This document shows positions 2,257-53,343 of a stretch of 64,000 bases of DNA, in pieces. Source of the stretch: Corallochytrium limacisporum Hawaii (Eukaryota; Protista; Pluriformea); the NCBI GenBank assembly GCA_002811645.1, contig PDIP01000070.1, positions 1 to 64,000 of the forward strand, read 5' to 3'. The notes under the pieces are model-generated. The model was given only the letters and a program-made list of their open reading frames with translations, did no database searches and had not been told where the DNA came from. Every line of letters begins with the position of its first letter. Positions within the stretch are counted from its first letter, which is position 1. Made by a program: the position numbers and the translations under genes.

Positions 2257-3239
2257 TTCTTTTACAATTGTCATTATGCTCGTGGCAGGCCCACAACCGG
2301 TTTGTGTGCATTCTCCCAGAAGGCAATGACCGTGCACACTTAGACCGTTTCAAAACTGCAATCGACGATGTGTAAATCAAAACTTCTTACGGCAGCAGGA
2401 ACGCCCATGACCCTACAACTGACCATCCGAGCCAAGGCCGACAACAAGAACTCTTCGGCACTATGTCAGATGGTAAGCAGAGCACTTACTGGTCAAAATA
2501 GTAGTATTCTAGTTCGTACAGTTCGCAACCAATTCCCGCAGCATCCTAACGCATTGTCCCTTGTCGTACTTTACATAGAAGCCTTTCCAGCATCTACGAA
2601 CCGAAGAGCATATTGCAATCACACGCATACACACACATATATAATCATCCTTCCATGACAACATGCTGAGAGATTGATAGATCAACCGTTTCCTTGATAT
2701 TGGAAATGGAGCCACTTTACACACCCTTCTTTGAAGAGCATCGCACACGGGTGATCTCAACGATGGCAGCAGACTAATGAACCTGCCCACAACCACCAAC
2801 AAGCCATGGCCATTGGTGGGATCTTCCACACCCGTCACCATGTCACATGAAGCCGACCTCCTCCCCAGTATTTTCGGCCCACCTTCGCCACCGACATGGT
2901 CCACAGTCACGTGTCATACAGGCACGGTCGCAGGGGCAATACTCGGGACATAGTTACACAGTCAGGGTGGTCCACCGCGTCGAAAGACGTTAGCGAGACC
3001 AAAAGAAAGGCGCTCCGGAGTTAAGACACACAAAGCTCTCTCACCTGCACTCACCGACGCTCGCACACAAACGCAGGATATGCTCCGCAGCCCGGCCGCT
3101 CGAGCCTTACGTGTCACCTCCCTTCCCGACCGTAGTGCCACGGTGGCACCCGCGTTCACACCCAATCCCGGTGCAGTCAGCTTCAATAGCCAAAGAATAG
3201 CGTGAAAAATGCTGAGACATGCCCGGCCCCGAGACAGAG

Positions 3240-41254: not shown

Positions 41255-42169
41255 TTAGCATCGCTTTAGCAAATCCTTAGCTTCATCCTGGGCGCCCTGA
41301 TCGTCGGCATCGACTATGGGCAGCTTCAGTGCCTTCTCTAGCCACGGCTTGGCCTCTTCCGGTTTGCCCATTTTCAGGTAGCACTTGCCAATCATAACCT
41401 GGTTCTTCTTGTAGAATCCAGGCTCCAGCTTTTCAGCCTCGACAAAATGCTGTAGGGCTTCCTCCCAGGTACTCTCCGGGATGGTACCGAAGATGGCAGC
41501 TGCAATTCGACGCTCGTACCATGCCACCTCGGATACACCAACGCACCACATTCCGAGCAGGTGACGGCTAGTAGGGTCCTGCGGGTTCAGCTCGCAGGCC
41601 TTGTCAAAGTGCTCGCGGATCTTCATAATGTTCCCTATCTTCTCCTTGGTTGCCAAAAAGTCACCCAGAGCACTAAGAGTGATGGCGTACCACTTGTGGA
41701 CAGCGAAATCATTATCCTGGTCCATGGCCAGTGCCTCTGTGGCGAGGTTTTGAGCCTCCCGTATAAACGCTTCCTTCTGCTTCTTGTCCGTGGCTGCATC
41801 TCCGAGCTTGTATGCGCACCGGGCCTGACGCCACTTGATGGCCGCAGAGCCTGGGGCCAGCGCGTCGTAGTCCGCCAGAAGCCTGGCGAGTGCCTCCATG
41901 TCATTACGTTCGAACAGTTGATCCGCGAGAGCGATCACGCTCTGCAGGTCAGGCGCCTTGCATTGGACCACAACCAAGGGGGAGAACGTGTAATACGCCA
42001 CAAAAGCAGCCACACCTCCGGATGCGGCAGCAAACATGGAAGATCTGATGCCCTTGCTGCTGATACTGCCGTACGATCTTGCCGTGCTTAATGGCCGCGA
42101 CACTGCCACCCTGACAGCGCCCGGCCGAACGGAGCGGACTGCCAGTCCCCGATGCAAACCGCGCATCAT
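41255..42169 (-). CDS. RMDN1: Regulator of microtubule dynamics (RMDN/FAM82) TPR-like protein with a mitochondrial presequence
   Basis: ADQLF, WR.AR, HKWYAI, ELNP.D.T..HLLG.WC..V....WYERRIAAAIF...P.ST.EEAL..F..AE...PGFY.KN; R-rich N-terminus. Confidence 0.88.
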   Translation of the reverse strand: MMRGLHRGLAVRSVRPGAVRVAVSRPLSTARSYGSISSKGIRSSMFAAASGGVAAFVAYYTFSPLVVVQCKAPDLQSVIALADQLFERNDMEALARLLADYDALAPGSAAIKWRQARCAYKLGDAATDKKQKEAFIREAQNLATEALAMDQDNDFAVHKWYAITLSALGDFLATKEKIGNIMKIREHFDKACELNPQDPTSRHLLGMWCVGVSEVAWYERRIAAAIFGTIPESTWEEALQHFVEAEKLEPGFYKKNQVMIGKCYLKMGKPEEAKPWLEKALKLPIVDADDQGAQDEAKDLLKRC

Positions 42170-44076
42170 GGTTGGTCTACTCTAAGTTACAACAAAGAAC
42201 TAACCCCTCACTGAATGGACAAAACGATAGCCACCAGGCTAAGAAAGAACTTGAAATCTTCAGATACCCATGTCTTACGTGGCTTGGTAGTGCTGACACG
42301 CCCTCGACCCATCATCCGTCGGGCTCTCTCCTGACCGGGCACGAGTCCCTCTCCGAGATCTCACGCAGGGAACCCAGATCGCTCCGTTAGGCCCCCGAAT
42401 CATCCGTACAAAGTCTATTCATCCCGGGATCCCATAAACAAACCGGGACCTATCGGAAAGGAGGGGGGGGGGGATAACCCTCACCCTACCCGCCCCGTGG
42501 CTCAGGGAAAAAGGTCTCAGACCCACTGCTCCCCCCGGAAGGGGGGGGGGAGGAGGGAGAGGTGGCCCTACCGTTTCCACTTTTATTCATGATGCGCGAA
42601 CCCCGTGCCAATATTAGGCCCCGTGCTTACGTCGGCAGGAATCAATCAAGTTTGATCATATTCCTTTGATTTGATATTTAAAGAAATACCAGGGGGCGCC
42701 TGTCCAGGAGAAAAAGTTAAAAAGTGGTGTCGCCAAAAGGCGGCAAGGCCCAACCGCTCTTATTCTGCCGCCATTGGCCATTTTTGGACCAATGAGAGGC
42801 CCCCATTGGGGGAGCGCTGTCGTCCGAATGGTCACAAAGGAAGGGACCGCGCAGGAATGACGCACAAGCAAAGCAGCAAGAGCGGTTTTGGATGGTTTCC
42901 GGTAGAAAATATACTGGCTCTTTCTGTTGCAAGCGGCGAGAGGAGCGTTAGAAAAAATATTTCTCACAGCCCGGATTCCAGCAAGGTCAGAAACGGACCT
43001 GATCGCGACGAAGCCGCGATACCTATATATAATGTACTGAGTTCCTTATCTGCTAGGACGGGGAGGGGCAATACATGTGAAAGGCGCGACATGCTAAAAT
43101 TAAAAAGGTGGTCCACGAAAATATCTCCGGTAGTTTCAGTACAGCGGCATTAATGTTCTTCCATCTCCAGCTTAAACCTTCTCATTCATTATCTCTATGA
43201 ACGCAGAGCGGTCTTTTTTTTTTCTTATAAAGGGGGAGAGGCAGCGGGACGGCCATGCCCAGCCAAAACCAGTGTTTAGCAGAAAATTCAGAGGTGAGCA
43301 CATACACGCCGAACCCAGTCTGAATGTACTGGACTTGCAAAGCTGATGTCCGAAAATCGAGAGCGCGTCCCCGATGTAGCGGGCTCTGTTGGTCATCGAT
43401 CGTCAGCAACCGCACATCGAGAGAACCGAAGACCAAGACGATCTGATTTTTTGCTGCGGTTGGTAATAGCGCACCCACCCTCCCCACCACCAAGAACAAA
43501 ACCCACCTCTCCCTCCCTTTCCCTCCCCTCCACCTCCCTCCTTCTCAACGGGAAGGAAAAGGGGGGGGGGGAGAACTTCGGAACCACCCACGAAAGCCTG
43601 AACTCTTCAACCACTGTTGGGACGTTTTGATTCTGTTCGTTACTGTTGTCTGTTAGTTGTTGCCCTCGCTGCTGGGTGCAGGAAGTGGGTATGTGTGTGA
43701 GTGTGTATGTGTAGAGAGATACACCGTTGCGGCCGTCAACCGTGCTTCCGCCTCCCGTTGGGTAGGCGCGCTTTGACCCTGACGGCCGGCTTCGATGGTT
43801 GCGGGGGTGGGAGAAAGGGGTTCCATGTTCGAGCTGGAGTCCGCGCAGAGTGATACTCGCGTCGCGGATTTTACGTCGCAACGGTAGGACCGCTGGAATG
43901 TGTTTGGTTTGCAGGAAGTCTGCGAGATCTATTTCAAAAAGGAAGGAAAATAAAAAGGAAAGTGGAATATTTCCGCACATAAATGGTCAAGATTTGAAAA
44001 GTATAGGTGTGACGAACGGAGGTGTGGGAAACGATCCATCAATGAACGGGTGATAGAGAGGTGCCTAGAGTGTGCC

Positions 44077-49503: not shown

Positions 49504-50541
49504 TCTGCCTGTGTATTCAAATCCAAGTGAGGAATATTTGTTCCCTTAACCAATTCCTGTTGAACACAGCCATGGATGTCATGAATGGAGCATGTCTGTT
49601 TTCATACGTTTTGATCCAACAACGTTCAATGACAACTGAGGACGGAAAGGAAATACGATCCGAGGTCTCATGGGTCTGCTTGAAGGGGCCGCCCACTGGT
49701 CCCCACAGGGCACACAGCAAGGACAATTACTCTCACTATCGACTCTCCCTCCATCCCGGCCTTGGCTCGCTAAAGACCGTGTTGTTTATGCCTCCCCACT
49801 CACTGTCTCGCCTCTCGTTCGCGTTTTGTGGCTCCCTCAAATTCAAATATGGTCCGTATATATATATATATTTCATTGGCCTAAATTGTTCGTCACCACC
49901 CCGCCGTCCGCGATCCCCTCCGCTGGCGACAGGGACCGAGCGAAGCTACAGCTGGGGAAGCAGTACAAATTGCATGGAAAGCCCCTTGGGGTGACGGGGG
50001 TCGGGGAAACGGGAAAATTTTCTGATGCTGAAGCGTCCGGCCGATGATATGGCCGCCTTGGCGATATATTGAAAATAAAGAGAGATTATCTGTCTCTACA
50101 ACAATAACAGTGGGGAGATGAATTAAGCGTATCGACGCGCGTATTCCTGCATTGTGGTACGAGTGTGTGTATGGCTTGGATGAAAGGCGGAAGTGTTTCG
50201 TCTTACAATTCGCCGAATCTCGTGTTCTCTGTCTTTTCCAGTTTTGTGACCAGTTTGCCTAGCATTATGCTTTGTATACAAATGGACTTCGGTATCTAAT
50301 TCTCTTCTTGGTGGTATTTGGGATCGCCAATAGTGTAATATACCCAAGATCAGATTTAGACAATAGACAACTGGCACTGGTGATATCAGCCATCGTATTG
50401 CATTGCATGACTGTCTTGGAATCATTGGCACAAAGACCGTTCGATATACTAGGTGAGTACAGAAAATGTGAGTTAGTTTACCCACCACTAAACTAAAAGG
50501 GCCCAGATAAATTGGAAGAAGAGGTCCGATAACAGATAAAG

Positions 50542-51735: not shown

Positions 51736-52133
51736 AGCATATTGCAATGTGACCTTGAAATCATTTTATTTTGTACCATTAAATCCGTATTCAATTTTAG
51801 CTCATCAAGACTCTCAATGGCTCCGATCCATCTTGCACAGGCCCGGTACTCCACTCCCCCCCCACAGCACCTGCCTCTTTCTTTCACTTGGAGGGGGCGC
51901 AGCCTTTTCGCGCTCACGGACTGTCGCGTGGGCCACTGTACAACTACGACAGCATTTTCATTTGTTTGACAGTGAACGCTACGCTAATACATCGAAATTT
52001 CGAAACAAATGTAGTTTTACAGCAAAGGTATCTGATCTGATAGGTGAGTCTCTATTTATGACGCATGTAGTGCCAGGTATGTTCATATTAACGTTAAAGA
52101 AAGAAACTGTAATATATTTCTATTGCGGGTACA

Positions 52134-53228
52134 ATGAGCTCAACTCTGACCTTGCGCGTGGTACGCGGCCATGTTGCACGAGCTTTTCGGACTTCGACAG
52201 GTAAGTAATTTTGTTTGCACATAAGCGCGGACCACGGATCTTGAATTAGGCTGGGGAAAATAACAGTTGTGGTGTTAGTACTATGATGATAATCTGTTTA
52301 GTGGGTCAGTCTTAAGGGAAGTGTCTGGTAGGACCCAAAGCGCCAGTGAAGCGAGTCGTGTGACGTTCTTTCGTCTCCGTCAGAAAGGTGCGCCCTGCTG
52401 GCCGGGATCGACTATGAACCGATCCGTTATTCCTTTTCTGGGTCGAGCTGTAGGGAGAACCTACCTGCCAGCCTACCTATCCATGTGGATGTCCGACGCA
52501 CGCGTCTGAGCTATACCAAACTGTCCTCGTTTTTAAGTTCCAAAGTCTTTATCAACCTTTTCTTTGTCATTTGCAGCAGGACTAACCGTACTTTCTCACT
52601 GTTCTTATTTTTTGTTGACTATGCCCCAGTCAATGGTGCAAGGCCCTCTCGGATCATTCTGAATCGAACCTTCACAACATCTGGAAAGCAACTGGCGGGT
52701 ACCACCATAGATGACAAGGACGAGGGAGCCGTTCGATATGAGACTGTTTACGAATCAAAGGTGAGCCAAGCACTGCGTACGATCAAGATCATATCCTTCA
52801 CTTCATGCCTCGCCTCGATTACTGCAGGCCCCGTGATTGCCATCTACGGCAACCAAAGCATCAGCATGAACGGACGGCTTGCTATTGGCGCCATCATTGC
52901 GACGATGGGCATCTTCACGACAGCCTCATTACATTCATTTGCTAAAGGCTACGTGACGAAGCTGGAGTACGACGAGGAAAACCAGAAGCTACGGGTGAGC
53001 AAAGTCGGACTCATGGGCCAGGTGCTCGAGTCGACGGTGTCGCTGGACGATGTCGGACCAATTCGAAGCGTGCACCCTTACCTCAATGTGCGCATGGGTA
53101 ACCAAGACCTGTACGTTCCCCGGGACCAAATTAAACACCCTGATTTGCTCAAGGCTTTCTTCAACGCCGAAGTTGACGATGTGCTGGAAGAACTGCGCAA
53201 GGAGCAGCCCCAGGAACGAGGTTCGTGA
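52134..53228 (+). CDS. TMEM70: TMEM70 mitochondrial ATP synthase assembly factor; spliced join(52134..52200,52630..53228), 221 aa
   Basis: Exon 2 has VY......L...K..S..S, two TM helices and FTT..LH.F.K.YV..L.YD. Exon 1 (acaATG, MSSTLTLRVVRGHVARAFRTST) ends at a perfect G|GTAAGT donor, and its phase matches the CAG acceptor at 52629. The join gives a typical mitochondrial presequence. Confidence 0.85.
52201..52629 (+). other. Spliceosomal (U2-type) intron, 429 nt, phase 1
   Basis: GTAAGT donor, ACTAAC branch point (52581-52586), T-rich tract and CCCAG acceptor. Splicing restores an ATG-initiated frame. Confidence 0.85.
52263..52524 (+). ncRNA. Candidate long intronic box C/D RNA (snoRNA/scaRNA-like)
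   Basis: C box ATGATGA 52283-52289, D box CTGA 52506-52509, a 15-bp flanking stem (52263-52279 with 52510-52524) and several internal helices. Confidence 0.65.
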
Positions 53229-53343
53229 ATAGGACTTGGGCCGTACCAATAACATTAGATAAAGAAACATAACAAATTTCCGAACTTGATTACTTTATGA
53301 ACAATCTTCAATGCCAATATGCTGTGTATTGTCGACGGGCTTT

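Follow-up and report, generated by a model that had tools for sequence, protein, structure and literature searches.

Within a 64,000-nt stretch of the Corallochytrium limacisporum genome (contig PDIP01000070.1, positions 1 to 64,000, hereafter the window), one gene retains an intron in which a box C and a box D motif are joined by a stem. In C. limacisporum, a single-celled holozoan, the intron density is about 0.0 per kb of coding sequence (PMC5560861). Does this intron carry a functional RNA, and could such an RNA account for the survival of the intron? A sequence-only reading of the window had proposed an undescribed long orphan C/D RNA, highly structured and possibly scaRNA-like. We conclude that the locus probably encodes an orphan, intron-encoded box C/D snoRNA, a candidate of about 235 nt, which is the best reading of the evidence. 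The earlier proposal is upheld in its boxes, stem and intron, while its scaRNA-like and structured aspects are not supported. The features of the locus are listed in Table 1.

Table 1. Features of the TMEM70 locus and of the candidate RNA (positions within the window)
Feature	Position	Strand	Basis or remark
TMEM70 exon 1	52096..52200	+	RNA contigs begin at 52096-52101
Host intron, 429 nt, GTAAGT...CAG, phase 1 in codon 23	52201..52629	+	Joint in X3 and X4
Terminal stem, 5' arm	52263..52279	+	Pair probabilities mostly 0.72-1.0; register ambiguous at 52275-52276
Box C, perfect RUGAUGA (ATGATGA)	52283..52289	+	Sequence; kink-turn register
Segment after box C, candidate antisense element	52290..52312	+	To SSU or to LSU A-loop region
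Possible degenerate D' box (CAGT or CTTA)	52307..52314	+	Inferred
Internal branched domain	52325..52471	+	Predicted only, p 0.6-0.95
Interior helices	52325-31/52465-71 and 52332-37/52439-44	+	Predicted
Interior hairpins	52342-52402 (long, irregular); 52405-52425; 52450-52464	+	Predicted
Candidate C' box ATGTGGA, 2 mismatches	52483..52489	+	Same variant listed for Neurospora CD41
Segment before box D	52490..52505	+	No D+5 target
Box D, perfect CUGA (CTGA)	52506..52509	+	Sequence; kink-turn register
Terminal stem, 3' arm	52510..52524	+	Predicted pairing
Branch-point motif GACTAAC, branch A 52585, pyrimidine tract after	52580..52586	+	Sequence
TMEM70 exon 2, stop at 53228	52630..53285	+	PF06979; RNA contig reaches 53285

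Host gene and splicing of the intron

The host gene was identified as TMEM70 by a Pfam match of its second exon (PF06979, E=2e-12), and it is flanked by the genes for Vps23/TSG101 and Med25. Its product is identical to the database protein Clim_evm14s222. The first exon, with its ATG at 52134 and 67 coding nt, gives the same first 22 residues as this protein and encodes the start of a mitochondrial-presequence-like N-terminus; the N-terminus of Clim_evm14s222 is reproduced by the TMEM70 frame after splicing. Just upstream of Vps23, the plus strand of the window holds a 74-aa hydrophobic ORF (50272-50496) with GTGAGT motifs near its end and no Pfam match, possibly a small membrane protein gene.

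The TMEM70 intron is real and spliced. Positions 52201-52629 are skipped by a GT..AG joint of 429 nt in the assemblies X3 and X4 from two strains, which are labelled probable RNA, have no coverage between genes and consist of assembled contigs only. An unspliced contig across the intron is also present in both X3 and X4, and therefore retention or slow splicing is common in both strains. By contig depth, which is a rough measure, the unspliced form compares with the junction as 14.9 to 10.1 in X3 and as 21.4 to 72 in X4. If the intron is retained, translation would stop two codons into it. Regulation of TMEM70 by intron retention is a possibility, in an organism with reduced nonsense-mediated decay (NMD); the NMD machinery of C. 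limacisporum is partly lost (PMC5560861). The prominence of unspliced contigs and the immediate stop upon retention are consistent with a rival explanation in which there is no functional C/D RNA at this locus, the boxes being fortuitous or decayed and the intron being kept for another reason, such as the regulation of TMEM70 by retention.

The minus strand is also intron-like over 214 nt (52464-52251), with GTAGGT, TACTAAC at 52280-52274, a pyrimidine tract and CAG. The corresponding joint is absent from the RNA contigs, three similar matches occur elsewhere in the window, and the resemblance is probably due to chance.

Box C/D anatomy of the candidate RNA

The terminal elements agree with the earlier description. 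The perfect C box (52283) and D box (52506) are both seen in the sequence, and the 15-bp stem said to join them is recovered between 52263-52279 and 52510-52524 with two bulges and predicted pair probabilities mostly above 0.85, which makes it the best-defined part of the predicted fold. The kink-turn register is canonical, running from C52281-G52510 through G.A, A.G, U.U, G-C, A-U and U.G. The distance from the boxes to the branch point, previously put at about 75 nt, measures 76 nt from box D to the branch A. The two boxes span 227 nt from C to D, from which we infer a length of about 235 nt after trimming.

Among 20,000 shuffled introns, only 15 had both boxes with an adjacent stem of -15 kcal or lower (P about 7.5e-4). 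Perfect boxes with a stable stem are, moreover, a mark of expressed snoRNAs as opposed to pseudogenes (PMC12309372). Together with the exact kink-turn register and the 15-bp stem, these observations argue against the explanation without a functional RNA. The long C..D..GACTAAC pattern by itself is at chance level in the genome (11 matches, compared with 15 in the control); the candidate is the only one of the 11 matching loci to combine a 5' splice site with a stem closely abutting the boxes. The internal boxes are poor, with two mismatches in the C' candidate and a degenerate D', and, counted by the D+5 rule, neither CAGT nor CTTA as the D' box points to a known methylation site. By its testable features the candidate would belong to the intron-encoded box C/D snoRNAs, as a member of no Rfam family.

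Interior fold and conservation between strains

The description of the RNA as highly structured was not borne out. Relative to dinucleotide shuffles, the z-scores of the minimum free energy were -0.39 for the whole RNA, +0.53 for the C-to-D region and -1.46 for the inner domain, so that none of the three folds better than the shuffled sequences, an outcome that the sequence-only reading had itself named as counting against its proposal. The interior may still be structured, since many real RNAs show modest z-scores. Most of the nested helices named earlier do appear in the predicted ensemble (p 0.7-0.95), with the exception of GCGCC/GGTGC, which loses to a helix between 52342-52348 and 52396-52402 (p about 0.8, ensemble prediction).

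The second strain carries a single substitution within the RNA, G52445T, at an unpaired linker base in the predicted model. This corresponds to 1 change in 262 nt of RNA, compared with 4 among 125 synonymous sites (Fisher p=0.04), a comparison in which the synonymous rate is given by four changes only. The intron flanks are as conserved between the strains as the RNA (p=0.03), and therefore the constraint is not assignable to the RNA alone. Conservation of the entire intron, a fold that equals the shuffles and the lack of a family or target (see below) all speak for an intron without a functional RNA; weighed against the boxes, their register and the stem, we consider this explanation unlikely.

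Search for homologues and known RNA families

The intron RNA had no Rfam match at either the gathering or the E-value thresholds, and a search for paralogues in the genome (24.1 Mb, 286 contigs) returned only the locus itself. Exact-pattern and protein-based scans of metagenomes for homologues were blank, and two marine metagenomes contained no contig over the RNA. Four loci with relatives of TMEM70 were single called ORFs with no similar RNA; these relatives are distant, with best matches of 24-36% identity, sponge proteins among them. As no homologue was found, there is no covariation. A survey of the genome for intronic C/D RNAs told little (171 matches against 146 in the control), and our literature search found no papers on snoRNAs of Corallochytrium.

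Several known identities were considered and rejected. The candidate has no U3 match, and the U3 of this genome, with its box A'/A and B/C motif, lies on contig C84. U14 was not among the matches either and is encoded on contig C230, so we regard the U14-like word before 52496 as coincidental. A telomerase RNA would be expected to hold a template word, of which there is none in the RNA for the TTAGGG telomeres seen at contig ends. The snR4/snR45/U13 type of acetylation guide was rejected because there is no GS1/GS2 complement to the helix 34 or 45 sites (sites from PMC5464676). RNase MRP, U1, U2 and U4 were located elsewhere in the genome. The suggestion of a scaRNA-like RNA, or of a C/D-H/ACA hybrid, is not supported: the RNA has no H box, ACA or GU repeat, and it has no significant match to U1, U2 or U4 as a guide to spliceosomal snRNA, the short matches to U2 and U4 being at chance level.

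Rfam and pattern searches did not locate nuclear RNase P RNA, U5 or U6, which may have diverged, be interrupted or have escaped the filters. Short consensus patterns served for the U6, RNase P and splice-site searches. As no RNase P RNA was found in the genome, although two Rpr2-family proteins exist, and as the interior has a motif resembling CR-I, we considered whether the intron, as in insects, might host a nuclear RNase P RNA of very divergent sequence or a module derived from P/MRP. The CR-I-like motif, with one extra base (52316-52327), can form a P4-like pairing with 52468-52474, and intronic RNase P RNA is described for arthropods (PMC4287351, PMC6797745). However, the 301 nt submitted to Rfam gave no P/MRP score even at E=10. 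Where CR-V should lie the consensus is not matched, CR-IV is out of place, the order of CR-II and CR-III is reversed, and the intron RNA offers no room for P3 and no convincing P2. A PRORP gene also exists in the genome. The pattern search for RNase P RNA produced 20 matches (33 in the control), none of them convincing, and with no more than 15 of 1558 candidates scored in the genome search, the absence of this RNA from elsewhere in the genome is unproven. Overall, an RNase P origin is very improbable.

Some further RNA genes and related loci were noted in the genome. The U3 gene is divergent and long (about 330 nt, C84 about 42012-42340, minus strand), below the Rfam cut-off with recognisable boxes. 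The U14 gene (C230:50343-50464, minus strand) has both antisense domains and lies between a donor-like GTAGGT and a CAG rich in pyrimidines, so it is probably intronic. The PRORP gene (C250:223734-225662) encodes 642 aa with a PF16953 match and an N-terminus like a mitochondrial presequence, and the two Rpr2-family genes lie on contig C176. Introns are present in tRNA genes for Met(CAT) (C271:13414-13548), Ile(AAT) (C270:54212-54311), Ala(AGC) (C143:96468-96941) and Thr(CGT) (C257:40832-40950). Contig C286 is densely populated with AT-rich tRNA genes, one of which has the anticodon TCA, and is probably the mitochondrial genome.

Candidate targets

The target search was performed on the rRNA of C. 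limacisporum itself and revealed no significant guide to rRNA. There is no antisense element before box D, the preceding 16 nt having no target in this rRNA (P=0.9), and a 13-bp match to SSU precedes only a poor D'. A 9-nt LSU match reported earlier is present in the organism's own rRNA and is not significant alone. Among 57 tRNA loci listed, part of them probably mitochondrial, a 15-nt complement to the T-arm/3' acceptor of tRNA-Val(TAC) at 52397-52411 (14 Watson-Crick and 1 GU pairs) reached a P of about 0.05 before correction for 16 tests; it was rejected, with only 17% of it unpaired and no box at D+5.

The best single duplex is formed by 52294-52306 with SSU 1333-1345, in 13 uninterrupted bp (11 Watson-Crick and 2 GU). 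With CAGT as the D' box, it would make the RNA a lineage-specific guide with a large insertion that directs 2'-O-methylation to SSU A1337. The position of the unbroken duplex between box C and a D'-like tetramer suits such a guide, as does its P of 0.07 within the segment, but P rises to 0.33 over the whole interior and CAGT is without the GA required for a kink-turn. No conserved methylation is known to us at the equivalent position, about yeast A1341. A methylation guide of this kind is improbable in our estimate.

The second site of note is the A-loop region of LSU (about 2991-3013), with which 52298-52312 can pair across the loop at -21.5 kcal, which ranks first among the rRNA sites of the 5' segment; SSU 1333-1345 scores nearly the same (-21.3 kcal). 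The 5' flank of the A-loop can in addition pair with 52491-52499 (7 Watson-Crick and 2 GU). A more specific version of the snoRNA reading can be built on these matches, namely a two-part guide that brackets five A-loop nucleotides. Here 52298-52306, the 9-nt match reported earlier, would pair with 9 nt on the 3' side of the loop and 52491-52499 with 9 nt on the 5' side, leaving UGUUC unpaired. The RNA would either open helix 92 as a chaperone or, as an adaptor, present the loop to a stand-alone methyltransferase, for example Spb1/FTSJ3, as snR4/snR45 do with cytidines for Kre33. The principle is known from snR4/snR45, in which two-part pairing loops out the target bases (PMC5464676), and the yeast A-loop carries Um2921 and Gm2922 (PMC11121408).

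In the rRNA comparison, the best bipartite match anywhere has a gap of exactly the 5-nt A-loop. The A-loop is the top site for both segments jointly as well as for the 5' segment, with none of 250 shuffles of the 5' segment equalling its score and a joint site-specific P of 0.004. When all rRNA is taken into account, however, the scores are ordinary (P=0.18-0.36, and 0.39 and 0.51 in a further comparison), and the site was chosen afterwards, among many ideas tried. Because the flanks of the A-loop form a hairpin, the two matches depend on each other; in the constrained fold each segment is unpaired to only 40-45%, and SSU 1333-1345 scores almost equally. The numbering of Um2921/Gm2922 was placed on the C. 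limacisporum loop by our own assumption of equivalence. We regard the two-part guide as the best lead to a target, though one of low probability.

Comparison with known long C/D RNAs

Long orphan C/D RNAs of 200-300 nt, such as Neurospora CD53, are known (PMC5824354, PMC2780460). Nc CD53 of Neurospora crassa (fungal CD_53, 212 nt, family 200-300 nt) resembles the candidate in being an orphan with perfect terminal boxes and a long interior. It is intergenic, in contrast to the intronic candidate, and the few short words that the two share by eye are in a different order; no homology is claimed. Yeast snR4 and snR45 and vertebrate U13 are likewise long C/D RNAs with poor D'/C' boxes and a variable helical bridge (PMC5464676). 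They differ from the candidate in that it has no helix 34/45 complement and that its 5' end lies in the terminal stem and is not a free GS1. The scaRNAs and hybrids (U85, SCARNA9) share its length, intronic location and C/D ends, and the candidate is set apart from them by the H box, ACA and GU repeat that it lacks. Human SNORD17 (intronic, about 237 nt) and yeast snR190 are similar in length and in their C/D-capped layout with a long interior; the candidate differs from them in that it has no Rfam match and lacks an intact guide with a good D' box after it.

Proposed function and significance

Transcription of TMEM70 and removal of the intron by splicing are both shown by the RNA contigs. By analogy with known C/D RNAs, the terminal stem would keep boxes C and D together in a kink-turn to which Snu13/15.5K, Nop56/58 and fibrillarin bind, and the intron would be debranched and then cut back by exonucleases until only a few bases remain outside the boxes. 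The branched interior of 150 nt would act as a spacer between the weak D' and C', a layout shared with snR4, snR45 and further long C/D RNAs; helical D'-C' spacers have a precedent (PMC5464676). As the most likely role, the segment after box C may pair transiently with pre-rRNA, and the RNA would serve as a folding or assembly chaperone and not as a D+5 guide, with the LSU A-loop and SSU 1333-1345 as candidate sites. If the RNA is real, we would guess the chances of such a role to be roughly even.

A need for this RNA would account for the survival of the intron through genome-wide intron loss, and its persistence because of an ncRNA cargo is plausible. The U14 of the same genome is also found between splice-like signals. 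That snoRNA cargo preserves introns has already been published for intron-poor fungi, in which the RPL7 (snR59/39) and NOG2 (snR191) introns are retained with their snoRNAs (PMC8476143). The fungal snoRNAs have known rRNA targets and ribosome-related hosts, whereas the host here is a mitochondrial ATP-synthase assembly factor.

As 90% of fungal C/D snoRNAs are 80-135 nt long (PMC5824354) and a recent snoRNA finder excludes lengths above 164 nt (PMC12309372), the candidate would be an unannotated and unusually long C/D RNA outside the usual size range. It fits the idea of introns kept for their snoRNA cargo, and here the lineage is genetically distinct and its intron density about 0.0 per kb of coding sequence (PMC5560861). 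The importance of the RNA would hinge on whether the A-loop pairing is real; bracketing of the A-loop, if true, would carry the principle of snR4/snR45 over to the peptidyl-transferase centre.
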